A stretch of 64,000 nucleotides of DNA from Lytechinus pictus (taxonomy: Eukaryota): positions 13,454,001-13,518,000 of the forward strand of contig NC_087248.1 in the NCBI RefSeq assembly GCF_037042905.1. The letters run 5' to 3'. A program made the position numbers and the translations under genes. The first letter of the stretch is position 1. Every line of letters starts with the position of its first letter. Under the pieces are notes generated by a model. The model was not told the origin of the DNA. It saw nothing but the letters and a program-made list of their open reading frames with translations, and did no database searches. Below are positions 400 through 26,180 of this stretch, piece by piece.

Positions 400-761
400 C
401 TACAAAGTGTCACCAAGGAAGAAAAAAGAGGAATGAAAGATTAAGAAGAAAGAGAGAGAAGAAAAAAGAGGTGGGAGAAGGGAAAGAAATTGGGATAAGA
501 CAAAGAGAAGGGAAAGCAAGAGGTGGAATTTGAAAGAGAATAGGAGGCAACCTTCAGAAAAAAAACTAATTATGCAATACAAGACATTTAACAATGGTAA
601 CAAGTAAATAAACTAGTAGTTGCATCGAAACGAGCACAAAAAAGGGAAAAGTAGAGCTGAGTAAATACATGTAGACTCCCGAAGGAAGTCGAAGCAGTGT
701 TGATATTGCACATGAGTAGATAAATTGCAAACCATCTAAAATTCAAAACCCGAAACAGTAC

Positions 762-797
<36 letters not shown>

Positions 798-1200
798 GGA
801 AAGGTAGGAGAGAAAAGGCAGAAAGAAAAGGAAGAAGAGGAAGGGGGAGAGATGGGAAAAAAAGATGAAGGAGAGGAGGGGAGAAAGGAGAAAGAGTAAA
901 GACAAAAGGGGAAGAAGCAAAGAGGAGCAGATAATTCCAAGAGAGGAGAGAGAAAAGAAGGGAAGAGAGGAAAAAGAGAAAGAAAAAAAAAAGGAAAAGG
1001 AAAGAGAGGGAGGAAAGGGGAGAGAGAGGAATAGGAGGGGAGAGAAGAAAGAGAAAGGAGGAGAAGCAAGGAGGAGGGGACAGAGAAATCCAAGAGTGGA
1101 GAGAGAAAAGAAAGAATAACAGAAGACAGAACAGAAAAGAATAGAAAAAAGGACAGAAAAAAGGAGAGAGAAAAATAAAAGTACTGTTCATCAACAAAAG
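400..1200. repeat. Polypurine (GA/A-rich) low-complexity tract with an A-run at 763-792
   Basis: Seen directly; it generates the spurious F/L/S and K/E/R ORFs. Confidence 0.9.
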
Positions 1201-1219
1201 ATACAAGTTAGAAGTGAAA

Positions 1220-3252
1220 TCAAACAAGCTTTAAATCATTGATTATCTTTACTGCTTGAGGTAGGAATGAATTTTTGTACCTAGAAGTACGGCAAGGTAT
1301 ACGGCAAAGAGGATCAGAATTTCTCAACTGACGGAAATTTGGCAAGGCATCTCTACGCTGTGGAAGCATGCGTGCATGCCTTGATTGTACAAAAGACCTG
1401 ACAAACATTGTAAGTAATTGAAAGCGTCTATCAGCAAGGGTTGGGATGTCCAAACACTCAAGGGCATGAAGATAATCAATATAGTTACCATAACCTAACA
1501 TTATACGACAGGCCCTCCTTTGTACACGTTCAATCTTATCCGATTGCTTGGCAGTTATGGAGGATGACCAAACTGGTGAGGCATATTCGACCAGTGGCCT
1601 AATATACATGCTATAAATAGCAACCAAATCACTCATTGGGACATTGTATCTCTTAAGTACACAAAGAATATACAATCGTTTTGATGCTTGTTTGATGACA
1701 TAATCCACATGTATATTCCATTTCATGTCGGATTGTAGGTAGACACCAAGTAGCTTAACAGACTCAATGGACTGAAGAACATCATCTCCAATACTGATCT
1801 CCGGCATGGGAGTAGGTTTCCTTAAAAAGGATATATGCATTATTTTACATTTCTCTGGTTTTGGGGTCATTTGCATATCAGAAGAACATTTGGAAATCAA
1901 AGATATATGTTCCTGTAAGGTAGAGGGTTGTGATTTGTATCTGATTTCAGCAACACTCAAATCATCCGCATATTTCCATCTTAGGGGAGTAGACGTAGCA
2001 ACGTCGTTGATCATGATAAAAAAAGAATGGGTCCGAGCTTTGTCCCTTGCGGGACGCCACAGGTAATTCTTGCTAAATTACTATGAATAGACCCAACTCG
2101 AACACTTTGAGATCTATTACTTAGATAGCTACATAGCAATACAATAATGTTGGGATTAATGCCAAGGTCAATCAATTTCTCAATTAATACATTGTGATTT
2201 ATATGGTCAAACGCCTTAGCATAATCAATAGTACATAAAGTGGCAACATGACCAGGTTTATCAGTACCTTTGAGGATTGAATCAATCAAGCTTATCATAT
2301 AGTGGGAGGTTGATGATCCTTTAATGTTACCAAACTGTTGCGTATCTATCTTATTTCTGATATCCTGATACAACCACTTGGTTAAGAATGACTCAAAAAC
2401 CTTAGCAAAGGTGGGGGTAAGAGATATTGGTCTTAAAAGATCAACAGAGTTACAGGGGAAAGTCTTGGGAATAGGGACAATGTCAGAGTTCTTCCAACAA
2501 TCGGGGAAGATGCCAGACTCCAGACTACTATTGAAGATCATAGCCAATGGTTCAGCTAATTCCGGGGCAAATTCAGTAATGAGTCTGACAGGTACATCAT
2601 CATGATGACAGGATTTAGAAGCATTGAGCTTGCGCAATTCTTGATGAACCTGATATGCTTCCACTCTAGGGGGTGGTTGTGATGCAGGTAAGAAAGACTG
2701 TAGAGTAGAGATGTCAAGCGGAGGTAGTTGACTACAAATACGAGCGAAATGGCCATTAATAAGATTAGCTTGATCGATAGGGCGCATTTCACAACCAGGA
2801 AGGGATGTAGCTCTTTTATTCATTCCAGTGATGCTACGAATTTGCTGATGCCAACTTTTCGGGTTGGATTTCCGTAAAATCATGACTTTCTGAGAATAGA
2901 AGTGATCCTTTTGCACTTGTACCTCACGTTTGACTCGATTGCGAAGATTCCTATAATGTGCCATCCTATTAGATTTGAAAGCACACTGCCTTTCCTTAAT
3001 TAGCGATAAGATGCGTTTAGTGATCCAAGGCTTATCCCGAGATCTGCGTTTGACATTAACTAAAGGGAAGTGTAGATGGAACATCCGAGAAAGAGAATCC
3101 TGGAAATCAGAAGCCATATCTTCGACGGTCGGGTGCTCGAGAAGGTAACTCCAGCTAGTAGACGTGATCTCCTCACCAAAAGTACGATATTGTCGATACC
3201 ATAATATTGTCGATACCATAATTTTCCTCTTGAAAATCGAAAAATTGATCAA
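1220..3252 (-). pseudogene. LINE ORF2 reverse transcriptase, frameshifted
   Basis: Frameshift in a T-run at ~2015-2025 between GPILFL and MIND...KYADD; no endonuclease domain present. Confidence 0.88.
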
Positions 3253-6078: not shown

Positions 6079-8790
6079 GATTGATTGATTGATTCATTTA
6101 TTTCCACACTTCATAAAAAGAACAATACAGAGTAAAGATGGTATTAAAAAATACAGTACAATATATTCCGATGCATAAAGAGAACATACACTACACAAAA
6201 CAATATACCAAAATATGAACAATACTTAAATCAGACAAGAAGATAAACAGTATATGTAAATGTGGGGGATCATTTAAAAAGTTAAAAACTTATAACATAA
6301 TCCCAATTTTGTCAATAAAAGTTTGAGTTTTGCAGAGAAAGACTAAAAAAAAAAAAAAAAAAAAAAAAATTGTAATTGAGGTAACTTAGTTTAGGAAATT
6401 AAAGTTTTTGTAGAAGAAATGTTTTAAGTTTATATTTAAATACATTAAGGGATAGAGAACTTTTGACATCTTCAGGGAGACTGTTCCAGAATACAGGACC
6501 ATTATGAATTATTGACTTTCGGGATAATGATAATTTCCCACATGATACACGGTAATCAGATTTTCTTCTAGTATCATAATTGTGAATATCAGAATTTTTA
6601 CAAAATAAAGAATCAAAATTTATTGGAAGTAATTTCTTATAGTATAAATACATAAAGATACCAAGATTGTAACTATATAATTCATACACAGGCAATATTT
6701 TAAACTTAAGAAAGAGTGGAGCAGTGTGAGCTCTGAAACTAGAATAAGATATCATTCTGATTACTCTTTTTTGTAAAACTAAAGTTCTATCTAATAAATA
6801 TTTATTTGAAGACCCCCAAACAATAATTCCATAATTGAGATATGACAAAATTAAAGTGTTATAAAGCATTAAGAGAATATTTTGTGGGACAAATTCACGT
6901 AATCTATTTAAAACACCTATATTTCTAGAAATGAGGGAGTTTATTTTGTTAACATGACTTTTCCATTTTAAATTATCATCAATGTGAATTCCAAGAAATT
7001 TTACACTCTCCACCCTTTCTACTTCAGTATCATTAATATATAATTTAACAGATTTTTTATCTACATTGTTTCTACTGATGATCATAAAATTTGTTTTCTG
7101 AATATTCAAAGCTAAATTATTAACAGAGAACCATTCCTGTACTTTATTAAGTTCAATATTCATATTTTGTTGTAAATAACCTATGTCACTGTGGCAAAAA
7201 AATATATTTGTGTCGTCAGCAAAAAGAACAAATTTTAATAAATTAGAACAGAGATGAAGATCATTAACATATATAAGGAAAAGAAGAGGACCGAGGATTG
7301 AACCCTGCGGTACGCCTATTGATACTTTCTTGAACGAAGAATGACATGAATTATAAAGAACACATTGCTTTCTATTACTTAAATAATTGTGTATTAATTT
7401 AAGGGAAATACCTCGTATTCCATAAAAAGATAATTTACTAAGCAATATGTCATGGTTAATACAATCAAACGCCTTTTTTAGATCAATGAACACTCCAAAC
7501 GTTATTTCGTTATTCTCATAAGCATTTATAATGTCATTTAAAGAATCTATCAGAGCATGAGATGTACAATGTTTTTCTCTAAAACCAAATTGTTTTTGAT
7601 AAAGTATATGATTATTGTTAAAATATGTAATTAGCCTAGTATAAATACATTTCTCCAGCATTTTGGAGAAACATGATAATAAGGAAATTGGTCTATAATT
7701 TGAGAAAACATTTTTTGAACCAGATTTATATACAGGAATAACTTGTGATATTTTACAACTATCAGGAAATATACCTTCTTGAATACATAAATTGAAAATA
7801 AAGCATAATGGTTTACATAAAATATGAATTGTCCTTTTTACAACAACATTTTCAACGCCATCAATTCCTGGGGCTTTTCCATTCTGTAAACAATTTGCAA
7901 TGTTAATAATTTCCTGTTCTGTAATTGGTATGAGAAATAAAGAACAAGGCAGGGTGTTTTTCAGGTAAAAACTATAATCAATATTGCCTCTTGCAATGTT
8001 GTTAGTGATAGTATGTCCAATATTGGTAAAATATTAGTTAAATGCAAGTGCAATGTCATTTTCATTTCTGATTTCTATTTCATTATACCTAAAAACTAAG
8101 TTATTATCAGAGGTTTCAGGTTTCTGTTTGTTTAATAAACCATTTATAACTTTCCATGTTTTGCAAAGATTGTTTTTTACTTTATTAAATTTAGAGTAAT
8201 AAAATTCTTGTTTAGTTTTTCTAACAAGACTCACATATTTATTCTTAAAAGATTTATATTTTGCCTTTTTAATATCCGTAGGTTTCTTTATGAAGTTTGC
8301 ATACAACCTGTTCTTCTTTCTATACATACGTTTGAGTGTAATATTAAACCAATCATTCTTTTGTTTTCGGCTTACTATTTCTTTTAATGGGAAACTAATT
8401 TCATATATTTCAAGAATAATTTTCATGAATTCATCATAGAGCAAGCTAGGGTCAGCAATATTGTGACTGTCATAAATACAAGAAAAGTCAAACTCTGATA
8501 TTCTTTGTAAGAACCTAAGGATGCCATCTTCAGTAATTTGCCGTTTATGAAATTTTTTACTCGACTTCGTTGGCAACGAATAATCAAAAATAGAAAATAT
8601 TGGATAATGATCAGAAACATCACAGATAACAGAACCATAATAAAGGTTACATGAGTTATTAACAAAAATATTATCAATTAAAGTTGACGAAGTTTGAGTA
8701 ATCCTGATGGGTAGACTTATTAGTGGGGAAAAAGAAAATGATGACATCATTTCAAGAAATTCATTAACATAATTCAATTGATCAATCTTT
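6079..8790 (-). mobile_element. 5'-truncated L2-group LINE (end of APE endonuclease plus RT)
   Basis: ORFs 8034..8777 (RITQTSSTLIDNIF, SDHYPIF) and 6399..7661 (DLKKAFD, GVPQGSILGPLLF, FADD) are in the same frame; stop at 8034-8036; YRPISLL in between; (TGAT)n tail at ~6079-6095. Confidence 0.9.
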
Positions 8791-9720: not shown

Positions 9721-11351
9721 AGTCTTGTCATTTTTATCATGGGCATCCCGTAAAACATCGTACAAGACTTAGTCCGTTTACCACTAAAATTCAATGAAAC
9801 CACCATTTATTTAGCTTTCAAAATGTACAGTATTTATTTTACAGTGTGCAGCATTGGCGATGTACAAACGGCATTTTTTAACCAAATAAATCCAGAATAG
9901 CTCCATCTTTTGAAAGCTTGATCTTCATAATTGTAAAGCCGTAGCCTTTCGTTCTCATAACATTTCAGCGTCTGCCCTTTTTCTGACGTTGCATTTATTT
10001 AAGTGGAAGCCATGGGACTGTAAGTATAATACAAGATGTATAGACAAAGAACCTTTAGACTCAAGTCTAAGAGATGCAAAAAAGAAAGAAAGAAAGAAAT
10101 CTAACACTTTTATATATGGATATATGCATGATGTAACTGGACTATTATACAAAAGAATCGACAGTCTCGTTTTAATAGCCTACAATACATGTTGGTTCAT
10201 CTTCCCAGGTAACCGAGTTTCATTCTCGTATGTCGACAATCAACAATCAATAAATGTAATTAAGTGCTCTTGCTATGGGCGGTGGAGTGAAATAACATGT
10301 CAATCACTTATAAGTGAACTCTCTTTTAGATTCATTGACCGGTTGTTTCATCGATCAATTGATTGATTCTATCAATCAGGTATACACATAACAATTATAG
10401 GATTTTGTGAGTCGACAAACTTCGACAAGCCAGTCCATGATGGCCGGTGTGGCTTTAATATTTTCGATTCAATAATAATAACAATATCATGAACTATCGT
10501 TCTAACTAAATCGAAGTAAATATTGACAAGCAGTTTGCAGCTACAAACTATGCCAAACAAGTCTTGAACACCAAGGTAGCAAGATGAGTAGAAAGAAAAA
10601 TAAATAAAAAGTAAATAAAGAAACAAAGAAAAAAAGACATATACATTTGTTAGAATATTATTAATAATATTAATTAATTTGATAAATATGGCTTTATAGT
10701 GTAAGTAGGTAAAGTTTGCTTCAACGGATGATAAGAGCTAAAATAAGCACATGCACGTACACAATAACATGATGCCCCTTGGCACACCCTCAACATACCT
10801 AGACAGGCCTCATTAACTAAAATTCACTACCACCTACTCATAAACGATGTTTGTTACCTTACAGCGCAGCGTGAGAGAATCTCATAACATTCAAAATTTA
10901 TCAATTTAACATAAAAATACCACATTCGATTGTTAACACGTTAGTAACCTTTTTCATCCAATGTGTACGACTGAGAAAAATTTACCTTTAAAAGAACGAA
11001 CTAACTTTATAAGGTCTTATCTAAAACAATCATGAAGTATATACATCTAAAAAGGTACCGTTAACATTATACAGTTTTACACATAGAAAGTACAGAACGG
11101 ATGTCATTTGAGAACTATACTTATATATCACGCACAGTAAGATGATATTGCTTATATTTAGAATTTCTAAGGCTGTCAGATAATTCAGGGGGTCAAGGTT
11201 CCGTAAAAGTTCGAGGATTACAAACACCTCTGTGGAATTGCTAAGTGCTTTGAAAAAAAAATTAATAACCAAAGCTGAATAATGATTAATAAAATAAAAT
11301 AATTCAATTGCCTTCATTCACTTGTGGAGAGACGGTGACGCTTTAGCAATA

Positions 11352-13421
11352 TTAGTAATTGACATAAAGCCCTTCATCATCAACTAATTCATCAGTTGGA
11401 TTTGCAATGTTGTTCTCATAGAGGTCTGTAAGACTCATACCACAATCCTTATCATGTTCCAGAATGTTGGGTTCTTCATTGAGTTTGCATCTGCGGGTTA
11501 GACCGAGATCTAGTCCTGGAGACCTGGGGTCATCATAGTCTGACTCTAAAACTCTAATTCTGTTCGTCTTTCTGCTCATATCCGGTTTTGAGTACAACAA
11601 ATCCATATCTGCGTCCGTTTGAGCGGCTTTCTTCAATCTCGCAGATGAAGAATTCCGTGGTATTTTGCCTGGTCTAACAGAAGCTGAAAATGATGCCTGT
11701 ACATGGGGTTGATCTTTTGGTGATGGACTTGGATGCTGGATTGATATCGCATGTGAATTCAATTGGTCTATATCGACATCCCCAGGAGCACCTTTGATAT
11801 CATCTACAGAACAATATACAGAATCCGGGCTATCAGGGTAAGCCTCAGAATCATACTTCGTGAACCCAATGGCACCCGAGAGATCCCCATCATTTGAAGT
11901 GGACTTTGAGGGTAGATGGCCAAAGCAGTGGCTCTCGGGTTCCCTCTGCTTGTGCACCAGCGCCTCATGATCTGTACGAAATGAACCGGACACCTTTACG
12001 TCCTGACTTTGCTGCAGATTTCCATGATCTTTTATAGCCTCAGAAGTGACAGCTCCTCGAATTATGGTGTTATGAGATCTATGTCGGGTCGATAACAAGT
12101 CTAAGTTCACCATACCACCAGATATGTCAGAATGTTGAGTGTTAACGAAAACCCCTGTTGAAGCCGTCGGTAGTGATTCGTGCACTGTTTTTCCAAGGCA
12201 GGGAAGATATTTTCTTAAAGCACGGTAAAAACAAGTGATAAAGCCAGTTACAATACAACATAATATCGAGAGGCCTAATGTAACCAAAACCCAAATAGGG
12301 ATTTTCCTTGCTTCGATGTCTCGATCGGAATTCTCGTCCACTACTTTGCTAACAGTTCTTTCTGTGGAAGTACTTCCGGTGTTTGATTCTACATCTTCAA
12401 GACTATTTCGGTTGGATACGTTTTTACATTTAGCATTCATGATTGCACAATTTGCGTTCCCTTCAGGTGTGTCAAATGTAGACAGTGAAACGTTGCACTC
12501 TTTTTCTTGGATAAAATTGCCAATGTTTCGTAAGAGAACTGTCTTATTTTTACTCGGCACACCTGGTCCACAAAATAAAGAAAGACGCCCTTCATGGACA
12601 AATGATACAGTGTTGTTCGGTGACAGTGGAATTAGAATACTTCCATTGGTGTACCAAAGAACATCAGCGTCAGTTTCTCCTTCCGGGCAACATTCAAAAA
12701 AAGAATGCAGACGGAGATCTTGGACGAAATGAAATGAGCAGGTATTATTGTTAGACTTGTCTTTATTATTAATGAGGCACACGCTTGGCATAACTCGACC
12801 ATTATGTACGTCTTCAATAGACGAGTAAACACTGAATATGTTGGTTGAGTTAAAATCTCCATCAATATTCATATCACTAGTCCCATACTCATATAGAACC
12901 TGATCCCCGACCAGCAGTTGAACTTGATCCCCGACGTTCACCTGCATCCATTCACAGGACATCTGCAATCTCCGGGTCTCTTGGTCGTAGAGTGTTGAGC
13001 AGACAGGTTCTGTGCTTTCGATGGTTATATTGAACGACGCAATGGTGCAAAGCTTTTGATCCTTGTGATGAATTTTAAGCACGTACTCTCCTGAATCGCT
13101 AGGTTCAGAAAAAGCGATCGACAAGTTGATCGTTCGTTCTCCTGCTACATTTGTCAACTTATAACGGTCCCTGTTGATAGTTTCTTTGTCGACATCATCG
13201 AGCAGTTGATTCTTCTCATCTACCCATTTTGCCCATACGATTGACTGATTCTCATTCAAGGGGTCCTCAAGAAGGAATTGTACAGAAACATTCCGTCCGT
13301 CTACGGCTCCTAATGAGCGTTCCTGCCTGGCACCACACAAAAATGATACATATTCGCACTGTCCAGCGTGGAAGATGCTTTCAAGAAGGACAATTACATA
13401 AATTATTGAAGTAATTGCCAT
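11352..13421 (-). CDS. Ig-superfamily type-I transmembrane receptor, paralog 1 (689 aa, intronless CDS)
   Basis: Signal peptide MAITSIIYVIVLLESIFHAGQC; V-like domain (QSIVW, RYKL, LSI...DSGEY); domain 2 PVC...MSCEW; TM IPIWVLVTLGLSILCCIVTGFITCFY; tail motifs SVYCSV, LYSKPDMSRKT, YDDPR, YENN, YVNY. Confidence 0.9.
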   Translation of the reverse strand: MAITSIIYVIVLLESIFHAGQCEYVSFLCGARQERSLGAVDGRNVSVQFLLEDPLNENQSIVWAKWVDEKNQLLDDVDKETINRDRYKLTNVAGERTINLSIAFSEPSDSGEYVLKIHHKDQKLCTIASFNITIESTEPVCSTLYDQETRRLQMSCEWMQVNVGDQVQLLVGDQVLYEYGTSDMNIDGDFNSTNIFSVYSSIEDVHNGRVMPSVCLINNKDKSNNNTCSFHFVQDLRLHSFFECCPEGETDADVLWYTNGSILIPLSPNNTVSFVHEGRLSLFCGPGVPSKNKTVLLRNIGNFIQEKECNVSLSTFDTPEGNANCAIMNAKCKNVSNRNSLEDVESNTGSTSTERTVSKVVDENSDRDIEARKIPIWVLVTLGLSILCCIVTGFITCFYRALRKYLPCLGKTVHESLPTASTGVFVNTQHSDISGGMVNLDLLSTRHRSHNTIIRGAVTSEAIKDHGNLQQSQDVKVSGSFRTDHEALVHKQREPESHCFGHLPSKSTSNDGDLSGAIGFTKYDSEAYPDSPDSVYCSVDDIKGAPGDVDIDQLNSHAISIQHPSPSPKDQPHVQASFSASVRPGKIPRNSSSARLKKAAQTDADMDLLYSKPDMSRKTNRIRVLESDYDDPRSPGLDLGLTRRCKLNEEPNILEHDKDCGMSLTDLYENNIANPTDELVDDEGLYVNY

Positions 13422-13861
13422 GTTGAATCGAAATGATTCCTCACATCAGGGTTCAATATTTTGCTTCTATGATCACATAAATCCTGATATGACTTCTTTC
13501 ATGAAAAACTTTAATTCCTGCACGAAGAAAAAAAAAACCTGGTTGATCGATGAAATAAACAGAATTGATATACAAGGAAATGATATGAAGTATCATATTG
13601 AACAGCAGAAAGGTTTAACAATGCAATAAATCTGTAACACGCAATGTCTTACAACTGAGTGGTTCGAATTGAAGATCGGTTGTAGTTATATCTCTCTTAT
13701 TACGAGAGAGAAATAAGAGATATCAATGATTTTATGATTGTTTGTATGCATGCATCAAAACTAGTCTCAGTTTCGTTAGTCCATAAATCAAATGAAGTGA
13801 CTTGATAATATGCGGAAAATTACATGGCATCACGAATCAATACCTTTTGTTTGTAGAATAT

Positions 13862-13874
13862 GAAAAGTGAAACC
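13862..13874 (+). promoter_or_regulatory. IRF-binding element (ISRE/IRF-E-like) upstream of paralog 1
   Basis: GAAAAGTGAAACC matches the IRF consensus, ~440 bp upstream of the ATG; short motif in AT-rich DNA. Confidence 0.25.
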
Positions 13875-14282
13875 AGTAATTAAAAATATGAAACAATTGC
13901 TAGTTAAGCACTTTGCATCAATATGTAAATGCTGTATATATAAATATATCATTTCCCTATTTCACTAGAGAAAATACTCTTGATCGCTTTAAAGCTTATA
14001 AAGGTGTATCGCTCCATTTTAGTTGTATTTAACAGTCTTTGTCATTTCATAAAATATAGCTGTACACGTACACATTTTGTGCTAGTTAATGAAACTTATC
14101 ATTTGTTCACAAAATATTTTAAAATGAAACCTCAAAACTTTGGGCTATCCACTACAGCCTTCAGAACAAAGGTTTAAATCTTCTCCCAACACATATACAA
14201 TTTTGTGATCCCATGCATGGTAGTTCTGTGTATATCAAGGTATTTCTGTTTGTAATTATTATTTGCCGTAAACCAGTTGACA

Positions 14283-14466
14283 NNNNNNNNNNNNNNNNNN
14301 NNNNNNNNNNNNNNNNNNNNNNNNNNNNNNNNNNNNNNNNNNNNNNNNNNNNNNNNNNNNNNNNNNNNNNNNNNNNNNNNNNNNNNNNNNNNNNNNNNNN
14401 NNNNNNNNNNNNNNNNNNNNNNNNNNNNNNNNNNNNNNNNNNNNNNNNNNNNNNNNNNNNNNNNNN
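14283..14466. other. Assembly gap (184 N)
   Basis: Run of N. Confidence 1.
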
Positions 14467-14726
14467 AGAGTTACAATTGATCCAATCAATTGTAACTCTA
14501 TGGAAATCCAAGAGTGTCATAATTTTTTCTACAGGAAATTTGCAAAATGGCCTTTGTAAATAAAGGAGATCACATCAAATCGTCAAGAAATCGATGAATT
14601 TATGGATATACATTCATATCTAGATTTTGTTTAGAAATAAACATGCATTTTATATGTTGACTTTGCTGGCTTTCCATAGTTGCGATTGATTAAATCAATT
14701 GCAACTCTTTGTAAGACGGGGCCCTG
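14467..14726. mobile_element. MITE fragment abutting the gap
   Basis: Inverted ends agagttacaattgat ... atcaattgcaactctttgtaagacggggccctg. Confidence 0.55.
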
Positions 14727-15149
14727 ATCAGATATAAACAAGGAAAGGCTCATGAAATTTGTAATGATATCATTTTGAAGGTGATAGATAGACCTTTTCA
14801 TTCTTTTGGAAACTGTTAGGCCACCAAACCATAAAAGTAGTGATTCTTGATTCAATTCATGTTGAATTATCACAAAAAATGAGCGAGGTGCACACACAAA
14901 AAAATAAAAGCTTCTACAGGTTGTATGAAATGTAAGTAAAATTGTCACTAGCGATCCCACATTTAGAATCATGCACGTAATGAGGGGGGGGGGGGTGAGA
15001 AGTGTTCTCGAGTTTTGTTCCTCGCCCTATGGGAAGAGATCGCCACGCCCCCGCTCTGTCGTGACGAAAAATGGCATGAAATCACCGCGCATCCCGTTCA
15101 TATTTATATGGCATGTAAAACACAGCAATGCAAAACTTAAAAATGACTA

Positions 15150-15280
15150 GGGTCCATTAACACAAAGATTTGCGATTAATCGTACGCTTGATATTCAAGA
15201 TAAACTGTGTATTGTTGTGAATGCTATCAATCGTGGAAAGTTTTCTACGATGATAGCTAGGCTTTGTGTTACGGGCCCCA
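15150..15280. mobile_element. Short MITE (related fragment at ~49443-49515)
   Basis: gggtccattaacacaaag ... ctttgtgttacgggccc inverted ends; similar sequence gggtcccgtaacataaaggttagcgattgatcgta at 49443. Confidence 0.5.
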
Positions 15281-15977
15281 GATTCGCGCATGATCGTTTG
15301 TTATCCTAGTTCCAAAATCATTTATTTTGAGAGGCTACCAATTGATAACCATATTAATCATCAGTTTTAATACTTTGGTTGACATATGGGCCATATAGAC
15401 AACAGTGACTTGATAAATTGCGTGTTCTGCACACCTATTGACAACACTGAAAGTATCACGGATCTTATTTTTAAAAAGTGACCTGGTCAGACGCTTTATT
15501 GCATTAATATTTTAATGCATTTCTTTTCATGTTTGCAGGAAACGTAATCAGTAATTGCGAAAAGTTGCAACAACCTTTTAATGTTCACAGCCACAACAGC
15601 TCCTCAAATATTTTTCCTAAAATAAATCTAATGAAAGGAGCTTGCCATAAATGACGCGAACATTGTAAAGAGTTAGTTTTCATTAGCGGAATGAGTTCTA
15701 AATTTTCCTTGCAAAACCAGAATGATGGAGCATTGATATGTAAAGCATCGGACTCTAATAAAAAAAAAAACTTTCATAACTTTGGCATTATAAAATCAAA
15801 GAAATGCAAAATTTGAATTAGTTAAGCAAACTTAAAAAAACCCTTAGATTAATTTGGAAGAATAACATGAAAAACCGTTTAATCTCTACTTCTTAAGCAT
15901 AGGGCAACTGGAAAACCCAGAAGGAGCTGAAATATTCGAAAGTGCTACCAGTACAAAGTTTGCCATTATATTGATGA

Positions 15978-17948
15978 TCAAGTACTTAGAGCTGTAATCG
16001 CATGCAGGCTATCACCCTCTTCAGCGAGAGGTGCTTCTTTAGTTTCGTTGGCTTTGATTCTTTGAAAGAATTCTTCTCCAGGAACCCTTGGGTCGTCATA
16101 TTCAAACTCCTCAGATATGTTTGTCTTAGTCTTCCGACTTATATCAGCCTTTGCGTAGAGTTTGTCTCCATCCAAAATTAAATCGAACGACGATGTTGCC
16201 TCCGGTTTCAGGTTCAATGGATTGGAGTGATGTACATTTTGTTCAGTAGCGTGAAGCAAGATTTGGTCAGATCCCAAATGTGAAACCTCGATTCCCGTAC
16301 CTATTATATCCTTCTGGACATCATCAACTGTACAGTATGTATTGTCCGGATTTGTCGCTCCTTCGGTTGTTGAAAGGACAGCTATTGCGTTGTTGTGAAC
16401 GGTCTTAACCTCACCGAAACTGTTATTGCGATTCAGTAGAATAATGTTTTCGTCACCGGCATTTACTCGTCGGATGCCGTGTTTCTGATTCAACGCTGTC
16501 AACGTGCGCCGCTCGGGAAGTTCCGGAGGATTGTTTTGTCGGTTAGGGGATATCCTTGTCAGGTTATTTTTGATGCAACTGTTTACTTGTCGCTGATTGC
16601 CAGACTGTGGTTGTTCAGGGACTCTGTCACTTCTCGGCCGTGACAATGGGATTGAAAGGTTCATGCCAACAGAATCAGTGCTTTCGTTCTGGACTGCCAC
16701 CGTATCAGTGATGTGAATATGATTGTTCTTCTCATTCCGTTTTATGATGAGGTTTCTGTGACATTTGCTGAAGCAGCCACAAATGGATAATATTAATGTC
16801 ACTGTTGATATCACCACAACTGAATATAGCAATATATCCCTTTTAGTTGCTGGTTGCTGGGTTGCAAGTGGATTTGTTGGGGCGTTCACACTACTCCCAT
16901 TCCAATTATTTACATCACATGAGCTAGGACCACAGTACTTCAATATATTGGTGCCGTTCTCATGACACAATTTTTTGCATTTTAGCTTTTCTCGATTCTT
17001 AGTATCTTTTATTATCACAAGATAATGGCCTTTCTTTTCCCAAATGATAACATCAATTTGCTCGATATCAATCACAGGTACGTTGTTTGAATTACTAGAT
17101 GCAAGCAGGTTACATTGCGTATCAAAATAACACAACGAAAATTCTGAGTTTCTGCATATGCTTCGTCCAATAGCATCAGTTACAGATTGATTCTTACTTA
17201 TCAAACATGTTTGAAACGTAGTAAATCCACATTTTTGAGTCCTCTTCTCCCTGCCACTTAGTACAGAACATCCGGTTGGCACGCCATTCTGGTCAAATAT
17301 ATTTTGAACAGGAATGTGTGCGGTTAGTTTATTTGATAAATTAAAATTACCACCGAAATTCATCTCACTGGTTTCATACTCATACAGCACCTGATTACCT
17401 GCTACAAGTTGAGCCTGATCCCCTTTTCTCACCTGTAACCACTGACAAGACATTAGGAATTTACCACTGCTTGTATTGAAGAGCGTAGAACATACAGGTG
17501 GTGTACTTTCTATTGTTAGGTTCAGCTTTGCAAGAATACAAAGCGACTGAGAATCATGTTGAATCCTGATCACATGTTGTCCAGAATCACTTTCTTCAGT
17601 GAACACGATACCTATTTCTAACTGGGTCTCGTTAATCTCATCCAACTTGTAACGATTGACATAAAGGGATGAGTTGGTATAGCATTGCAAAGAATTATTC
17701 AGTAGTTTTTCACATCGCTGCACCACTTCTCTTTTTATCCACACAAGAGACTGGGGGCTTTTGACGGGATCTTGCAGATTGAATTTGAGAGAAATATTCT
17801 GCCCTTCAACCATCTTCTTTGACACTTGCTGATTCTGGTTACACCATAATGAATCGTCATTAGAAAAGGATGGTTGGATGAAGAATTCCACAGAACAAAG
17901 TAGAAAAAATATTGCCCTATGTTGAACTCCGATAGTCCGTCGAGACAT
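15978..17948 (-). CDS. Ig-superfamily TM receptor, paralog 2 (656 aa, intronless CDS)
   Basis: Signal peptide; LWCN...GQNISLKF...QSLVW...RYKL...DSGQH...SLC; PVC...MSCQW; TM ILLYSVVVISTVTLILSICGCF; tail NTYCTV, LYAKADISRKT, YDDPR. Confidence 0.9.
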   Translation of the reverse strand: MSRRTIGVQHRAIFFLLCSVEFFIQPSFSNDDSLWCNQNQQVSKKMVEGQNISLKFNLQDPVKSPQSLVWIKREVVQRCEKLLNNSLQCYTNSSLYVNRYKLDEINETQLEIGIVFTEESDSGQHVIRIQHDSQSLCILAKLNLTIESTPPVCSTLFNTSSGKFLMSCQWLQVRKGDQAQLVAGNQVLYEYETSEMNFGGNFNLSNKLTAHIPVQNIFDQNGVPTGCSVLSGREKRTQKCGFTTFQTCLISKNQSVTDAIGRSICRNSEFSLCYFDTQCNLLASSNSNNVPVIDIEQIDVIIWEKKGHYLVIIKDTKNREKLKCKKLCHENGTNILKYCGPSSCDVNNWNGSSVNAPTNPLATQQPATKRDILLYSVVVISTVTLILSICGCFSKCHRNLIIKRNEKNNHIHITDTVAVQNESTDSVGMNLSIPLSRPRSDRVPEQPQSGNQRQVNSCIKNNLTRISPNRQNNPPELPERRTLTALNQKHGIRRVNAGDENIILLNRNNSFGEVKTVHNNAIAVLSTTEGATNPDNTYCTVDDVQKDIIGTGIEVSHLGSDQILLHATEQNVHHSNPLNLKPEATSSFDLILDGDKLYAKADISRKTKTNISEEFEYDDPRVPGEEFFQRIKANETKEAPLAEEGDSLHAITALST

Positions 17949-19070: not shown

Positions 19071-20774
19071 CTACACAGATGTGTTCATATACAAGTCACT
19101 CTCAGTTGTTGATTCATCTGTTGGATTCGTTATGTTGTTGCCATAGATATGGTTTTCTTGATCGATCCTCGGGGCACGTGGATGGAGGCCATCTTCTGGA
19201 AAAAGAAGAAAGTCATCTTCAGGAAACGCTCCTCTACTCGCACCTCTCTGCGCAGATGTCGATTTCTTTGTTTTCTGGCTCAAGTCAGGTTTCGCGTAGA
19301 GTGCATCTAAGTTATGCTTTAGTAAATTTGTAGCCATCATTTCATCTCTAGATGTGGTCTCCGATTCCGATGAGGAACGTGGGAGCCCAACAGTAGAAGA
19401 TCCCTGGTTGTTATCGGCTGTCATTGCTAGTGCCCCTGTCTGATCGTCACCCATTGATGTCGAATCCCTGTGAAGACCCTGTTCCATATCCCTTCTTAAA
19501 ACATACCTTTTACTGAGGTTTCTGGTTAAACAACATTTCATGATGAAAGCACTAGCAACACACCCAAGTGCTAATGTTGATATTGCAGCCACTGCTATCT
19601 TAATGAATTGTTTTGTTGAATTCGTTGTTGGTTTTAGCACGCCAGTATTATTAGTGGTAGTAGGACTATATATACCGGTGGTAGGTTCTGCCAAATTGTT
19701 TCCAATATCGCTCGAAATCGAATTAGCATTTGAAAAATTCACCAGTAAAACTTTACATTGTTGGTCTGCTTTAAATTGGAAGAAAAGTTGCTGAAAGTTC
19801 AATTTGGAAGTTGAACATTCATTTTTAGCGTATTTTCTTATGTCAAAAAATGTCATATTAATAATGTTTGAATGCTGCTCTTCATTCAAAACACAGAAGG
19901 AAATCACACCATTTACAATTGTTGAATTGTAGTTTTCTGAAAAAGGAACAAGTGATTCATTGTTATAAACAAGCATAGTAGATCTGCTCTCTTCATTGGC
20001 GCAACATTTTAAGTTTTCACTAACATCAAGTCCGTTATACTTAGCTGTGACAAGGGGGAGGAATTTACATTCTTCTTTCCCCTTTCCATTTGTGTGTGAA
20101 ACAATGCATTTCTCTGGTAGGGGGATTTCATGAAGAATATCATCAAGGCCAATGTATGTACTAAAACGATGTGTTATATTGAAGGAGCCCTTGAAATTCG
20201 ATTCTTCAATCTGATGTTCAAAGATCATTTCATTGTCTACCTCAAAGTGTGCTCGATCCCCTTTGTTCATTTGCACCCATTGGCAAGACATCTGTAATCT
20301 TTTGTTTTCTTCGTCGAATTGTGTGACACATTTCGGACGTGGGATTTCGACTGTTATATTAAGCAGAAGAGCCGTGCAGAGTGACTGTGTACCGTGGTTA
20401 ACAGTTACTACATGGTGCCCTGAATCATTACTCTCAATGTATAGAAGAAACAAATCAAAAGTGTCGTTTGCAACTTCGACCAATCGGTAACGACTTACGT
20501 CAAGATCCCCGTCGTCTTGATCTAAAGACTTATTCCGTTGTTTAATCAACATTGATTCACCTTTTCTCCACACCAATGACTGAGTCCCGACTAATGGATC
20601 TTTCAAATAAAATTTCCTAGAGAAGTTTTGTCCACTCCAAACGTCCAAATCTTCATTCTGAGTTTTGCCACACCAAAATGGATCGTCATCAGAGACACTG
20701 GCGTGAAAAGTGGTCTGCATGACAATTAATGTCAAAAGCATTCTGCACGCTAAAAAGTATTTCGTTGGAAACAT
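19071..20774 (-). CDS. Ig-superfamily TM receptor, paralog 3 (ORF opens at 20822; likely start MFPTKY at 20774)
   Basis: MFPT start aligns with paralog 5; FWCG...GQNFS...QSLVW...RYRL...DSGHH...SLC; PKC...MSCQW; TM IAVAAISTLALGCVASAFIM; short tail with LYAKPDLSQKT, IYGNN, LYMNT. Confidence 0.88.
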   Translation of the reverse strand: MFPTKYFLACRMLLTLIVMQTTFHASVSDDDPFWCGKTQNEDLDVWSGQNFSRKFYLKDPLVGTQSLVWRKGESMLIKQRNKSLDQDDGDLDVSRYRLVEVANDTFDLFLLYIESNDSGHHVVTVNHGTQSLCTALLLNITVEIPRPKCVTQFDEENKRLQMSCQWVQMNKGDRAHFEVDNEMIFEHQIEESNFKGSFNITHRFSTYIGLDDILHEIPLPEKCIVSHTNGKGKEECKFLPLVTAKYNGLDVSENLKCCANEESRSTMLVYNNESLVPFSENYNSTIVNGVISFCVLNEEQHSNIINMTFFDIRKYAKNECSTSKLNFQQLFFQFKADQQCKVLLVNFSNANSISSDIGNNLAEPTTGIYSPTTTNNTGVLKPTTNSTKQFIKIAVAAISTLALGCVASAFIMKCCLTRNLSKRYVLRRDMEQGLHRDSTSMGDDQTGALAMTADNNQGSSTVGLPRSSSESETTSRDEMMATNLLKHNLDALYAKPDLSQKTKKSTSAQRGASRGAFPEDDFLLFPEDGLHPRAPRIDQENHIYGNNITNPTDESTTESDLYMNTSV

Positions 20775-23700
20775 GTTTGTAAAATATATGAACAATCCAG
20801 AATTCACTTGTAATGTGTACATCTAAGTAGAGCGCCAATACATAATAGCCGCATGAACAAGGGTAACCTTTCACGTGCAGCAAATAACAATAACACTATA
20901 TGGATTGTCGTTCTGTAGAAGGTAAGCCTTTGAGCAGACATTGGAGAAGCGCTAGACTTTGTTACCAAATACAAATGATATGTGGAGCACATCAGAGGAA
21001 ATCAGATTAAGATATGAACCTATAGAATGGGGAAGTATATGGGCGGAGCGTGGACCGATAGAGACGACCTACCTCTCCACCTTTCATCATTGGTTGAATG
21101 TTGAAATATATTTATCAATGCATATCAAAATAGATAACCTAATGTAAATTGGAAGCAATCAATTTTCTCAGGATTGATGATAAATATGCATCTCTCTAAT
21201 TTGATTTATCATCATAAACCAGTTATCATAATGATCTGATTGTGAAACCGAAGGTCATTATTTTCCGGTGTCATAATTTATTAAGCAGAGGCCATTTCCC
21301 ACGGTACTGACGTCTACAAAAATAAAGTGTTACATGAAATAATTAATATTATGTTAGAGGATTCGTTATAAGGTTGTTCCTTTCTTGTGATCACTCTGAT
21401 ACTTAAGCAAAATGTATACTTTGCTGCTGTTTTTTCAGGAATTTGACATGTTATGTAATCTATGGATTTTCGTGAGGAAATGAATTAAGATTGGAATTTG
21501 ACTTGAATAAAAATTGAATTGCAGTGTTCGTGAATATTTTCTGATTCTGGTTTGAAGAATTGATGTTAATATTGCATATGCTGTTAAAGATGACCGAATA
21601 TACCACCACACAGTCACATACTTTGTTCAACGATTTATCAATATACCCTTCCCAGCTGGTCATCATTTGTGAGAAAGCAGTCGGGCAACTCCATAAAAAT
21701 GTAATCTAACCACCTGGAAGTGGTCATTTCCAGAGATATTATTAGTTTGCATCTGTGTTATAGTTCGTGCGAAGAAACCACTGATTGCTCACGCGAATAA
21801 CCCTCTATCAATCGAAGTTTATATTTCTCCTCCTCATATAACAAGGAGAGAGGGAATTTTAATTATTTGTAAAAGAAAAAACACAAGGATTGCTTGTAGT
21901 AAAAAGGGATATAAAATGCAGCATCTGAAATGCACACGCATATTCCTTTTTCAACATATACACACACCCGTTCTCCCACTCTCTCTTCCTCACACACGCA
22001 TCCACTCGCAATCACCCTAACACCGTATACACCACACAAGCATACCGCCCTAACTTATAATTGCTTCGGGTATTATTCAAAATAAACCAAACTACCATTC
22101 GATGTTTTTTTAGATTTTGGAGCCGTAAATCATAAGGTTTTATAGTTGAAAGTTATATATTCATACTTCAATTCAATCTTTTCATGATACTTAATGCTTT
22201 TCTGTTATTAAGAGGTCACTCTTGTCCAAACAATGACAAACTGCACTACTAACAAAATAGGAAAAAGCACATGCAAAGAAATGAGACATGCTAGTAACGA
22301 CTAATTTTTTTTCCACAGATATTTCTTCTTTATCAATGTATAATAGTACGGAATATTTATAAGGCGCTTGATACGGGCTTTTCTAAGTGAACTGCTCTCT
22401 GCTATATTATAACTGGTCCCTTAATAAATTTGGTCTACTAATAAATTACATGTAAGTCCACCTAAATTTACCAATTCTCAAGTGGGTCATCATCTGTTGA
22501 AATGACAAGTTTTGAGCAGGGACTTAAATCGACCCACAAGCTTTATGTTTATAAACGCGTAAATCATTCCACAAAGAAGGATTAATTACATTGTTTATCC
22601 ATCTTATTTATTTAATACATTTTGAATTTGCATATTGATACGTTTTCAACTGCACATTGTAATGTTATGACTAAAAATGACATGTTTTGAGATGTCAATT
22701 AGCAATGCGGGGGTTCAAAGATGGTTTCGAACTATTCCATATATTATTCAAACACAAATTTAAACGCATTGCAGGCATCATTATAAATATACATTTAACG
22801 AATTTTAAATCGGTGATTCAATTGTATACAGTGATAGTTATTATTGAATGAATTTTTATTCAATAACTTATTGATTACCTTTTCCGTGATACAAATAGCA
22901 CGGGTTATTCATATTATGCAATTTCTTAAAGGAGTATTTCACACAAGGGCATGGCAATGTTTAATACGTTGCAGTAAAGTATTATAGAGTAATAAAACAT
23001 GTATGCGAATATAATGGTAAACATGAATATGCACACTAAGCTAGTTATGCAGTGAAAACGTATACAACAAATTTCCATGCACTAAGGGTACTAGTCTTGA
23101 GAAGAAAACCTTATTTATTATTTATCAAGAAAAAGTTATCAGGTTCGATACCCATTTCATGATACACACAAGTAATCATTTAAACATATATTTATTTATT
23201 TTTGATATTTGTACAGGGTGGCACACATCACCAACTTGGTGGTCTTCATTGTGGCCCTGTTAACAAAAAAATAAACAAATAATGTCACTAATGATAATAA
23301 TAGGCAAGTAATGAACCAAATACAATACAATAATAAACAATATGTACAGGCACAAAATGTATGCAAACATGTCATAAGAAAAAAATATTGGTATCCCTAG
23401 CAATTATGATCATTGGATAATCATTCAACTTTGACCCTTTGAATTGAATTTGTGAATTTTGAAGGTAGAACATACAAATACCATAATTAGAACGGAAAAT
23501 AAATCAAACATCAAGAGTGAGAAAATGATTACAAATCAACACATATATATTTAAACGCGTTTGTGCTTACAACTTTGCATCCTATTTAAGCTATTGTATA
23601 TCTCTTTAAAAACTAAAACAAATAAGCTTCGCCTCGGCCTTATAAAAGTTTTGCTTGCTCATGCAATCTTCCCAAATTATGCTTCCAGTAAGAAATTCGG

Positions 23701-23972: not shown

Positions 23973-26180
23973 TCAAAGAAAAGAAGAAGAATTCATGTAC
24001 AGATCAGCATCAAATGTAGGTTGGTTTATACGGTTGTCTCTATCACTGTCATCCGTGTGGCTCGTGAAGTCTTCGGTCGGTACCGATGCGTAGAGATGAT
24101 CATCAGATTGCGAAAGACTGTCTTGTGGACCGTCTCTAGTCATGGTAGTTGCATCAGTTGGAGTAATATCATGAACATGATGATCTACATGGTCGCAATA
24201 TTGTCTACTCTGTGGTACAGATTGAGACTCTTTCCCCGTGTTTCTAGTTTTCTTGGACATGTCTGGGTGAGCATACATGGCTTCCAACTCTCGTGCAGAT
24301 GGTTTCTGGTTTCCAACAGCTTTTTCAATGGGGGTTGGTGTTTTGTCAGGCGAAGGTAAGGGGTTGTCTTTGTCAACATCAAGACGATCCCCTTCGTTAT
24401 CTTCAGGTGATTGAAGTGGTCTCAGAATAGGCGAATCCTTTTGAGGTTGGTTTGTTCTCCCGATGATCCTGGTAGTGTTATCATATATTGAAGAATAAGC
24501 ACCGTCCAACTCTGGTATCATCGATACTAGATGGTCAGTAGAGTGCTTTGCAACATTGTCCCTTTTGCATGGGTCCCCTGCCCCCTTACCATCACCAGTG
24601 GTGTGAATGACTGAAACATTATTGGTAGACATGCATTTTCCTGGATATGACTCTTTCATGTCATTGGGGATAAGACGAATTTGAGAGTTTTCGAGATTTT
24701 GTAGCTTAGTCTTCATTCTATCTGGTTCTCGGATGTTTATGTCTAATGTCGATTGCTGATGAGAGACCGACTCATCGGTATCAATGTCCACGTCTTCTTG
24801 AGGTTGCTGCGATGAAAAGGTGATCGTGTCATGAGGTCTTGAATCATCAACGTCATCGTCTTCCCCTGAAGCTAAATACGCGAGTGTACACGTAGCATTT
24901 GACCTTTGTTCTCTTACCAGATATTTACCTTTCCGTTGAAAGTAATAGAAACATAACATGACAACAATAATTGTAATACTTAGGATATATCCAGGTGTTG
25001 CAATGGCTGCCAGTGGTATCAGCCTATCGGTCCCTACGTTCTTAGGATTTGTCGACTCTATCGGAGGGCTACCTTCACTGGTTGCGGGGATATGAATTTC
25101 TTTACTTGGCCGATCCGTTGTTGATTGTAAATCCATATTTGTTACATTCACGATAATGGTTTCACATCTTAGTTCACTTCTCGCATCGAGTGGATATTTG
25201 CTTTCGCTTGCAGATTTACCTGAGATAAAAAAGCGATCACGTTCAAACTTTGAGAAGTCTAAAATAATAATGTTATGGATAATTGGTTTCGCGGAATCAT
25301 TGCTTCCAAGACATACGAATGCAATATTGTTGCTGACATTGTGGAGTGATAACATAACGTAGCTAGCATTTTTCCACCATATCAATGGAGTACTTTCATT
25401 CTCAACGCAGCAATCAAGTCTAACCTGTCCCCCTCTGTTGTTCTCTACCATACTGCGCTGTGGAGTGACAAATGCGCACGTTTCTCCTATGTCGCCTATA
25501 GCATTGGCAACAACACAAACATAGTCATCGTTAACCATATCTTCAATACTGATATAAACACTGAATCCATTAGTGAGGTTGGGATTGTTATCCAGGTTTT
25601 CACCTGTAGATCTATCTTCAGCCAACAGTCGATTACCGGCTCGTAATTCTGCGTGGTGGTTACTGCTAATCTGTGTCCACTGACAGGACAGTTCAACCTT
25701 CGCTCTATGTTGGTCCAACAAAGAGGTACAATTGTTTTTGGTATCAATAACTGACAAGGTGAATATCAAGGCTGTACATTTTGTCATGCCTTCTTCATTT
25801 AGAATAATGATGTGTTGTCCAGAATCCTCTTGATGTGCAGATGCAATCAGGAGCTCCAAGGTACAGTTTGAGAATGACTTATTCAGCCTATAACGTGAAT
25901 TAACAGAGGACTCATTACTTGTACACTGCAGAGTGTTATTACAGGTCATACTCCATGATGCATGTGGTGCTATCCAATTCAGGGTTTGATTTTCAAGGAT
26001 AGGGCATTGAAGATTGAATGAAATAAAAACGTCTTGATGATTCAATACTTCGACCGATTCAAACTTGTATTTACAGTTTTCGCCAGTGTTTTCACTTAAT
26101 GAATAGATTCGAACAAAGGTATCTAGAATGATCAAAAGTAACAATTTATTTACTCTTGGAAAACGTTGTCTACCCTCCAT
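23973..26180 (-). CDS. Ig-superfamily TM receptor, paralog 4 (735 aa, most divergent)
   Basis: Signal peptide; QTLNW, RYRL, LLI...DSGQH, KC; LSCQW; DCC...IWW; TM LAAIATPGYILSITIIVVMLCFYYF; tail AYSSIYDN, MYAHPDMSKKT, LYASV, LYMNS. Confidence 0.88.
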   Translation of the reverse strand: MEGRQRFPRVNKLLLLIILDTFVRIYSLSENTGENCKYKFESVEVLNHQDVFISFNLQCPILENQTLNWIAPHASWSMTCNNTLQCTSNESSVNSRYRLNKSFSNCTLELLIASAHQEDSGQHIIILNEEGMTKCTALIFTLSVIDTKNNCTSLLDQHRAKVELSCQWTQISSNHHAELRAGNRLLAEDRSTGENLDNNPNLTNGFSVYISIEDMVNDDYVCVVANAIGDIGETCAFVTPQRSMVENNRGGQVRLDCCVENESTPLIWWKNASYVMLSLHNVSNNIAFVCLGSNDSAKPIIHNIIILDFSKFERDRFFISGKSASESKYPLDARSELRCETIIVNVTNMDLQSTTDRPSKEIHIPATSEGSPPIESTNPKNVGTDRLIPLAAIATPGYILSITIIVVMLCFYYFQRKGKYLVREQRSNATCTLAYLASGEDDDVDDSRPHDTITFSSQQPQEDVDIDTDESVSHQQSTLDINIREPDRMKTKLQNLENSQIRLIPNDMKESYPGKCMSTNNVSVIHTTGDGKGAGDPCKRDNVAKHSTDHLVSMIPELDGAYSSIYDNTTRIIGRTNQPQKDSPILRPLQSPEDNEGDRLDVDKDNPLPSPDKTPTPIEKAVGNQKPSARELEAMYAHPDMSKKTRNTGKESQSVPQSRQYCDHVDHHVHDITPTDATTMTRDGPQDSLSQSDDHLYASVPTEDFTSHTDDSDRDNRINQPTFDADLYMNSSSFL

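Follow-up and report, generated by a model that had tools for sequence, protein, structure and literature searches.

The receptor cluster

The window, that is, the whole stretch of DNA analysed here, covers 64,000 nucleotides of the sea urchin Lytechinus pictus (contig NC_087248.1, positions 13,454,001 to 13,518,000). It contains six long open reading frames (ORFs), here called paralogs 1 to 6, all of them on the minus strand and none requiring an intron. The stretch 13010–13345 lies in paralog 1 and codes for residues 26–137, approximately, of its product. It is the membrane-distal V-set immunoglobulin (Ig) domain, denoted D1, of a type I receptor from an intronless, tandemly duplicated sea-urchin family. 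This domain has no cysteines at the positions of the canonical disulfide between strands B and F, and carries instead two other conserved cysteines, one near the mature N-terminus and one in strand G, which are candidates for a substitute bond.

The product of paralog 1 consists of a signal peptide, three Ig-like domains, a disordered stalk, a transmembrane (TM) helix, and a tail with tyrosine motifs. Its N-terminus is a hydrophobic leader, the ectodomain has about 355 residues, the TM segment is a single strong hydrophobic helix by hydropathy (residues 378–398), and the tail, of about 290 residues, contains several conserved tyrosine motifs. In the AlphaFold2 (AF2) model of the whole ectodomain, three sandwiches and a disordered stalk are seen: D1 at 1–113, D2 at 117–206, D3 at 210–291, and the stalk at 295–354, the latter with the predicted local distance difference test score (pLDDT) below 50; model numbering is protein numbering minus 23. 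The part of paralog 4 equivalent to D3 has a weak match to the Pfam I-set family. The coordinates are collected in Table 1.

In the same genome 15 loci match D1, and 17 are found with a profile of distant members. Twelve of them form one minus-strand cluster at 13.43–13.50 Mb of C4, six being in the window; of the others, two are at 13.89 Mb, two on contig C5, and one fragment on C10. A stop codon is present in one copy of the cluster (L015/L031). Twelve ORFs of 450–800 amino acids are open in DNA of 37% GC, and the paralogs of the window family are 21–60% identical. Another cluster member, L005 (G000:C4:13429863-13430330), is a tail-less form of 448 amino acids ending a few residues past the TM helix. 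A 426-residue counterpart of L005 is present on seven Logan contigs, one of which, L016, has 76% DNA identity to L005.

A profile search of proteins yielded 254 matches at E <1e-3. About 50 of the 150 matches listed are generic multi-Ig proteins with at least four matched stretches; a full D1–D2 match is seen in 39 sequences (31 without near-duplicates) among the matches listed. The relatives come mostly from the ENA assembly ERZ26222911, with a few from Logan contigs and one from an unnamed UniParc entry. No protein name for the family is given in the source of any relative, and word-indexed protein searches produced two relatives only.

Conserved positions in D1

The initial annotation, made from the sequence of the window, described D1 by a set of motifs, and every motif quoted there is found in all six ORFs. 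The position of the B-strand cysteine is occupied by phenylalanine in all six (F49, F56, F71, F55, F53 and F54 in paralogs 1 to 6), and that of the F-strand cysteine by L115, I127, V139, I125, L121 and L121, respectively. The C-strand tryptophan, the RYxL motif and the D[ST]G motif are present in 6/6, while the tyrosine corner of DxGxY has Tyr in paralog 1 and His in the five others. The N-terminal cysteine is C29, C36, C51, C36, C33 and C34 in paralogs 1 to 6, and the G-strand cysteine is C125, C137, C149, C135, C131 and C131. In each of the six paralogs the G-strand cysteine comes exactly 10 residues after the F position; the N-terminal cysteine precedes the B position by 20 residues, except in paralog 4, where the interval is 19.

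The same pattern is observed in 13 intact paralogs of this genome and in relatives from other data sets. A cysteine at the B or F position is seen in 0/56 family sequences: the former position is F, L, I or V, and the latter V, I or L. The absence of these cysteines across 56 family sequences is far beyond chance. A relative from the same genome, L035, has cysteines in precisely the columns that align with B and F (LTLTC and GSYEC). Since L035 holds cysteine at both, the positional homology of the B and F columns is proven within the family.

For closer comparison we used alignment A3, comprising 14 D1 sequences, namely the 13 paralogs and the relative P0002. Its mean column identity is 43%, and no columns are invariant other than W, R, Y, D, G and the cysteine of strand G; thus the Arg and Asp residues of the salt bridge, the Gly and the Trp are all invariant. 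The N-terminal cysteine is present in every intact paralog; in four of the 14 sequences (L010, L011, L013, L014) MAFFT shifts it by 1–3 columns. The corner residue is Tyr in 3/13 and His in 10/13 paralogs; P0002 has His, and distant members mostly have Tyr.

Several other features of D1 recur. Seven of the 13 paralogs have an additional pair of cysteines, spaced by 5–9 residues, in the C'–C'' region (for example, at 17600–17740 in paralog 2), as do L035 and many distant members; by analogy with TIM-family domains it is probably a facultative loop disulfide. An N-glycosylation sequon GxN[VIF][ST] is seen at the A'–B turn in 12/14 D1 sequences (N44 in paralog 1), and a sequon N[IL][TS] in strand G, 5–6 residues past the conserved cysteine, in 10/14 (N131 in paralog 1).

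Fold of D1 and library scores

Structure prediction agrees with the proposed beta-sandwich. The AF2 model built on the 14-sequence alignment has two beta-sandwiches, D1 and D2, with the mean pLDDT 77, and D1 is a two-sheet V-like sandwich with strands (model numbering) A' 10–17, B 22–28, C 36–44, D 64–68, E 74–79, F 88–96 and G 99–112. VIA-align places residues 3–113 of D1 on residues 1–118 of an antibody heavy-chain variable domain (VH) with Z 10.6–11.2 and root-mean-square deviation 2.7–3.1 Å over 105–107 residues. The C'–C'' segment is predicted with low confidence (pLDDT <50). With the two-domain model as a query, Foldseek reports VCAM-1, CD2, CD58 and CD48 among the top 20 matches. The D1 profile compared to sequences from PDB matches TIM-3 (8e-5), CD48 (7e-4), 2B4 (0.016), and CEACAM1 and CEACAM6 (0.005–0.015). 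These matches are mostly V-set, with TIM-3, the T-cell receptor V-alpha domain and myomesin interleaved with CD48 and 2B4.

Further, the gap between the Trp and the RY motif is 23–33 residues, a C–D segment of V length. In the AF2 model D1 has the Greek-key sandwich of the V-set with its A', C' and C'' elements, and it retains the residues expected at Trp41, the Arg–Asp pair and the tyrosine corner. It lacks the Cys23–Cys104 'pin' disulfide between strands B and F, these cysteines being absent in 56/56 family sequences. Thus, D1 is, according to the models, a true V-set fold that has lost its central B–F disulfide.

The expectation that standard hidden Markov models (HMMs) would score this domain poorly holds as well: the Pfam V-set model matches 7/14 members with the best E 0.005, and none exceeds the 26-bit cut-off. 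The Pfam Receptor_2B4 model also remains below its cut-off with D1 (E 0.054).

Table 1. Features of the window and related loci of the same genome (positions are those of the window unless a locus is given).
Feature	Position	Strand	Comment
Paralog 1	11352-13421	minus	uninterrupted intronless ORF, 2,070 bases, 689 aa (ORF list)
D1, V-set Ig-like, without canonical B-F cysteines	13005-13352	minus	aa 24-139; AF2 strands, VH matches, PDB profile matches
Cys29, N-terminal (A-strand) cysteine	13335-13337	minus	codon position; about 7 residues past predicted signal cleavage site
Phe49 at canonical B-strand Cys position	13275-13277	minus	hmmalign column: Cys in L035, F/L/I/V in others
Trp63, kept C-strand 'pin' tryptophan	13233-13235	minus	invariant in alignments A1, A2, A3
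Leu115 at canonical F-strand Cys position (DSGEYVL)	13077-13079	minus	aligns with Cys of DSGSYEC in L035
Cys125, start of strand G	13047-13049	minus	10 residues past F position; invariant 14/14 (alignment A3)
D2, C2-like Ig, four Cys: C141 (A), C156 (B), C215 (F), C228 (G)	12735-13004	minus	aa 140-229; strands from AF2 DSSP
D3, third beta-sandwich, Ig-like, lower confidence	12480-12725	minus	aa 233-314; AF2 strands 210-291, pLDDT 67-80
D1 of paralog 2	17496-17858	minus	ORF 15978-17948; carries additional C'-C'' cysteine pair
D1 of paralog 3	20334-20687	minus	ORF 19071-20822
D1 of paralog 4	25734-26090	minus	ORF 23973-26180; N-terminal Cys one residue nearer strand B; six Cys in D1
D1 of paralog 5	31090-31443	minus	ORF 29779-31524
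D1 of paralog 6	43790-44140	minus	ORF 42140-44224
L035	G000:C5:15384624-15385193	plus	ORF L035:1402-3507:+; 702 aa, intronless; canonical B/F Cys and C'-C'' pair, without N-terminal/G Cys
L033	G000:C5:15199107-15199679	plus	ORF from L033:1279; 728 aa; N-terminal and B-strand Cys, without F or G Cys
Non-LTR (long terminal repeat) retrotransposon ORFs, reverse-transcriptase and endonuclease-like	736-3252, 6399-8777	minus	upstream of receptor cluster
ORF of 242 aa	53812-54540	minus	by eye resembles tyrosine-recombinase (Crypton/DIRS-type) fragment

The pair of conserved cysteines

Among non-redundant family members the N-terminal cysteine is kept in 43/47 and the G-strand cysteine in 42/47. In about 47 such members both are present in 41, neither in three, the N-terminal one only in two, and the G-strand one only in one. 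The three sequences lacking both are P0031, P0051 and L035, the latter having the canonical B/F pair instead; P0031 and P0051 belong to different subclades of the tree described below. For joint presence and absence of the two cysteines, Fisher's p = 0.002, uncorrected for phylogeny. The covariation is suggestive only. Exactly these two cysteines, and no others, are found in 5/14 D1 sequences (four paralogs and P0002), and five more add the C'–C'' pair. Where the N-terminal cysteine occurs without the one in strand G, another cysteine is seen elsewhere in the domain: at the end of strand F in P0058 and in strand B in L033. The latter suggests a different, A–B, partner for the N-terminal cysteine of L033.

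The spacings are informative about the location of the two cysteines. In V-kappa domains the distance from residue 3 to Cys23 is 20, and that from Cys88 to Phe98 is 10, the same as in D1; positions 3 and 98 lie side by side under the third complementarity-determining region (CDR3) loop, at the membrane-distal end. Since the spacings are equal, both D1 cysteines would be at the CDR-side end of the neighbouring strands A and G. Moreover, as the VH superposition starts at model residue 2–4, the N-terminal segment should follow the canonical path of strand A. Neither of the two cysteines can reach D2.

The second domain itself provides a precedent. Strands A, B, F and G of D2 each contain one cysteine, that of strand A within P-x-C, a pattern common to KirrelL, Kirrel2L, Hypp1164 and IgTM. 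As the canonical B–F bond leaves only the cysteines of strands A and G, an A–G bond is implied in D2, and therefore a staple of the A–G type is already used by the family. An alternative C141–C215 pair in D2, considered because both cysteines are absent in L010 and L013, was rejected: AF2 places them in strands A and F, and the relative P0016 lacks only the A-strand cysteine. The L010/L013/P0016 subclade simply has a degenerate D2.

Conservation, spacing, location at the same end of the domain, joint absence, and the precedent in D2 are all consistent with an intradomain bond, and it is likely that the N-terminal and G-strand cysteines of D1 form an A–G disulfide.

Origin of the family

The window family is linked to the KirrelL group of echinoderm proteins through L035. 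In a profile comparison by hhalign, the family matches L035 with probability 94.5% and E 8e-8 over 208 columns, and L035 in turn matches Kirrel2L from the same genome (BLASTP E 4e-14, 26% identity over 354 amino acids across three domains). By visual comparison this Kirrel2L differs very little from the Lytechinus variegatus sequence given in PMC8903837. The genome also encodes bindin (Pfam PF02084, E 1.5e-67), which marks it as that of an echinoid. Compared directly by hhalign, the family and Kirrel2L match weakly, with probability 12.7%. Thus, homology to the KirrelL-type superfamily is established transitively only, via L035. The architecture is also that of KirrelL: intronless coding, three Ig domains, a TM helix, a tail, and a four-cysteine D2. 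We rejected the possibility that the window family is KirrelL itself, because of the weak direct profile match and because D1 of KirrelL-type proteins carries the canonical cysteines. Because their D1 keeps these cysteines, the family is placed outside KirrelL, Kirrel2L, Hypp1164 and IgTM.

With Kirrel2L as the root, the maximum-likelihood tree places L035 as sister to a clade of 38 sequences supported at 97%, none of which has both canonical cysteines; L033 alone in this clade keeps the B-strand cysteine. The clade of the window is monophyletic with 99% support. A number of paralogs have one-to-one counterparts in the data set of another species, hence the duplications are old. The order of events in the tree is provisional because of the long branches of the outgroup and of some tips.

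Pairwise ratios of nonsynonymous to synonymous substitution rates (dN/dS) are 0.2–0.6 for most pairs and close to 1 in D1 of the youngest pairs. Judging by these ratios, the ectodomains are fast-evolving yet constrained. The comparisons show the family as a divergent, fast-evolving, expanded offshoot of the echinoderm KirrelL/Kirrel2L-type Ig-TM superfamily, and the tree, with the caveats of its rooting, places the loss of the canonical B–F bond at the base of this offshoot. The initial annotation had proposed that the domain defines an Ig subtype. The term is too broad: by the tree, hhalign and BLASTP the variant is specific to one clade within the echinoderm KirrelL-type superfamily.

The following sequence of changes may be proposed. 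At the base of the offshoot, as far as the rooting holds, the canonical B–F disulfide of D1 was lost, with a hydrophobic pair in its place, and the Trp, the Arg–Asp salt-bridge residues and the Tyr/His corner were retained through this loss. Two new cysteines would have been fixed, one at the beginning of strand A, about 5–7 residues from the mature N-terminus, and the other at the first residues of strand G. The bond between them would be intradomain, joining the N-terminal strand and the base of the FG hairpin, which is short and of fixed length. It would compensate for the lost core bond, in parallel to the A–G bond implied in D2.

Alternative explanations

A number of observations weigh against an A–G disulfide in a functional D1. 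No RNA reads from paralog 1 are present in three RNA-seq runs from the same species (about 25% of each, tissue unspecified), a result limited to the tissues of these runs. In a tree-aware independent-pairs test the two cysteines have 4 and 5 state changes, and the sign test yields p = 1, the test having no power. There are exceptions to the pairing: P0113 has the G-strand cysteine alone, and in P0058 and L033 the N-terminal cysteine has its partner at another position. The number of cysteines is odd in paralogs L008 and L014. The N-terminal segment of D1 is modelled at pLDDT 65–74 and forms a beta-bridge in one of two models. The side chain of Cys125 may be on the outer face of the sheet, as the predicted tight FG hairpin pairs Cys125 with the residue beside the core-facing Leu115. 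For stereochemical reasons, disulfides between adjacent parallel strands are uncommon. Finally, the signal cleavage sites of the family are predicted from the −3/−1 rule alone.

The two cysteines might form intermolecular bonds instead, linking receptor molecules, or the products of neighbouring paralogs, covalently into dimers or oligomers via the exposed top of D1. In the models both would be situated at the solvent-accessible membrane-distal end, the N-terminal segment is of moderate model confidence, and P0113, P0058 and L033 have only one cysteine of the pair. However, both positions are at a fixed intradomain spacing, both cysteines are lost jointly in three lineages, and 5/14 D1 sequences have exactly two cysteines; further, two-bond head-to-head dimers require a very specific symmetric interface, and nothing indicates one. 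We consider such dimers unlikely.

Another explanation is that the N-terminal cysteine has a different partner, such as a cysteine of strand B or of the C'–C'' region, a lipid or a metal, or has none at all, so that D1 is held by its core alone and the G-strand cysteine is conserved for some other reason. V domains free of disulfides are known to be stable in the CD2 and CEACAM families, the fold persists in P0031 and P0051 with neither cysteine, and in L033, which lacks the G-strand cysteine, the N-terminal one is accompanied by a cysteine of strand B, so its partner can vary. On the other hand, D1 of paralog 1, L002, paralog 3 and L012 contains no further cysteine to serve as a partner, and an invariant unpaired extracellular cysteine over such divergence would be unusual. 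This explanation, too, appears improbable.

That the pattern has no functional meaning, the ORFs being unexpressed or decaying copies whose cysteines are conserved by recent common ancestry, is very unlikely: the zero reads on paralog 1 in about 25% of each of the three runs, the stop codon in L015/L031, the fragmentary copy on C10, and dN/dS near 1 in D1 of the youngest pair are outweighed by twelve long ORFs open at 37% GC, by paralogs that are only 21–60% identical and have one-to-one relatives elsewhere, and so are old and maintained, and by dN/dS of 0.2–0.6 in most comparisons.

Hence the intradomain A–G disulfide is preferred. The explanation as a whole, including the identity of the domain, its origin, the loss of the B–F bond, the substitute bond and the function considered below, seems reasonably likely.

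Comparison with known systems

The Ig-TM proteins KirrelL, Kirrel2L, Hypp1164 and IgTM are intronless and specific to echinoderms (Ettensohn and Dey 2017; Khor and Ettensohn 2022, PMC8903837), and KirrelL is required for skeletogenic cell fusion (PMC8903837). Like the window family, this group combines an intronless type I structure with three Ig-like domains, a TM helix, a tyrosine-motif tail and a four-cysteine D2. The differences are in D1, which in the KirrelL group has the canonical B/F cysteines and no N-terminal/G-strand pair, and in the gene number: KirrelL genes are single-copy, whereas the window family forms a tandem cluster of 12 genes with fast-evolving ectodomains. Skeletogenic expression and function are features of KirrelL.

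The CD2/SLAM family (CD2, CD58, CD48, 2B4) has a similar arrangement, with a V domain lacking the B–F bond followed by a C2 domain with two disulfides. However, the V domains of the CD2 family are not known to have a substitute disulfide, and their ectodomains consist of two domains rather than three Ig-like domains and a stalk. Moreover, CD2-family genes have one exon per domain, unlike the intronless window family, and all similarity scores to CD2/SLAM are marginal. The N-domains of CEACAM proteins are also V-set without the canonical disulfide, and CEACAM1 and CEACAM6 are among the weak profile matches of D1; however, these proteins, of a vertebrate lineage, differ in domain architecture, and their N-domains are not known to carry a compensating cysteine pair.

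V domains without the B–F bond are thus known from CD2/SLAM and CEACAM. A disulfide between the N-terminal strand and strand G is known from the V-like domain of Thy-1, where it exists in addition to the canonical B–F bond and joins strand G at its C-terminal end, whereas the G-strand cysteine in D1 of the window family is beside the FG loop. We know of no report of a substitute A–G bond for CD2/SLAM, CEACAM or the first domain of Alr, the invertebrate system considered next.

The Alr genes of Hydractinia encode clustered invertebrate receptors of the Ig superfamily whose V-set D1 has no cysteines at B and F and is missed by standard HMMs (Huene et al. 2022, PMC9546547). Other Ig domains of Alr contain non-canonical conserved disulfides between neighbouring strands, A and B (PMC9546547). 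Unlike D1 of the window family, which keeps the Trp, the Arg–Asp pair and the Tyr/His corner, D1 of Alr lacks the Trp as well, and has no replacement disulfide; further, Alr genes are spliced and show no detectable sequence relationship to the window family. A literature search on this receptor family and on V domains with the A–G bond only returned nothing specific.

Tail motifs, transcription and possible function

The tails of the six ORFs (11352–12227 in paralog 1) share the motifs LYAKPD[ML]S[RK]KT, YDDPR and xxYC[ST][VI]D, and the C-terminal LY[VM]N. The motif [IL]YAKP also occurs in the tails of Kirrel2L and of the sea-star Hypp1164. By eye the tail motifs include SVYCSV, NTYCTV and DTYCSI. 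Of these, SVYCSV alone resembles an immunoreceptor tyrosine-based inhibitory motif, and a clear switch motif of this class (TxYxxV/I) is not evident.

Within 10600–16500, RNA reads fall on the intergenic repeat at 14343–14736 only. This is a short repeat, probably similar to a miniature inverted-repeat transposable element, with very high RNA and contig coverage and many strand-switch joints.

The architecture, the variable C'–C'' segment and the tail tyrosines suggest that the products may be surface recognition or adhesion receptors signalling by phosphotyrosine docking. The C'–C'' segment, variable and rich in indels, would be the likeliest region of contact with a ligand, and the function would be adhesion or immune-type recognition with docking of SH2 domains on the tail.

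Implications

The B–F disulfide and the tryptophan are the most conserved feature of Ig domains, which drives most HMM-based annotation. The relocated disulfide would explain why about 17 genes here, and dozens in the data set of another urchin, have no Ig annotation or name. The deviation of D1 is a real and well-conserved one, of structural interest, in an unannotated lineage-specific receptor family.

The echinoid superfamily may possibly represent a natural series of relocations of the 'pin' disulfide in one V domain: between strands B and F in Kirrel2L and L035, between the N-terminus and strand B in L033, between the N-terminus and strand G in the window clade and most of its relatives, and none in P0031 and P0051. 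We suggest, tentatively, that this series would coincide with the transition from a single-copy protein of the adhesion or fusion type to a tandem cluster of fast-evolving receptors, possibly immune or involved in self/non-self recognition.

Whatever the fate of this suggestion, the family, together with its canonical relative L035 in the same genome, would offer natural variants for asking how the Ig fold offsets the loss of its core bond. The comparisons also connect this receptor cluster, so far unannotated, with the KirrelL group, whose members are the only functionally studied ones of the echinoderm intronless Ig family.

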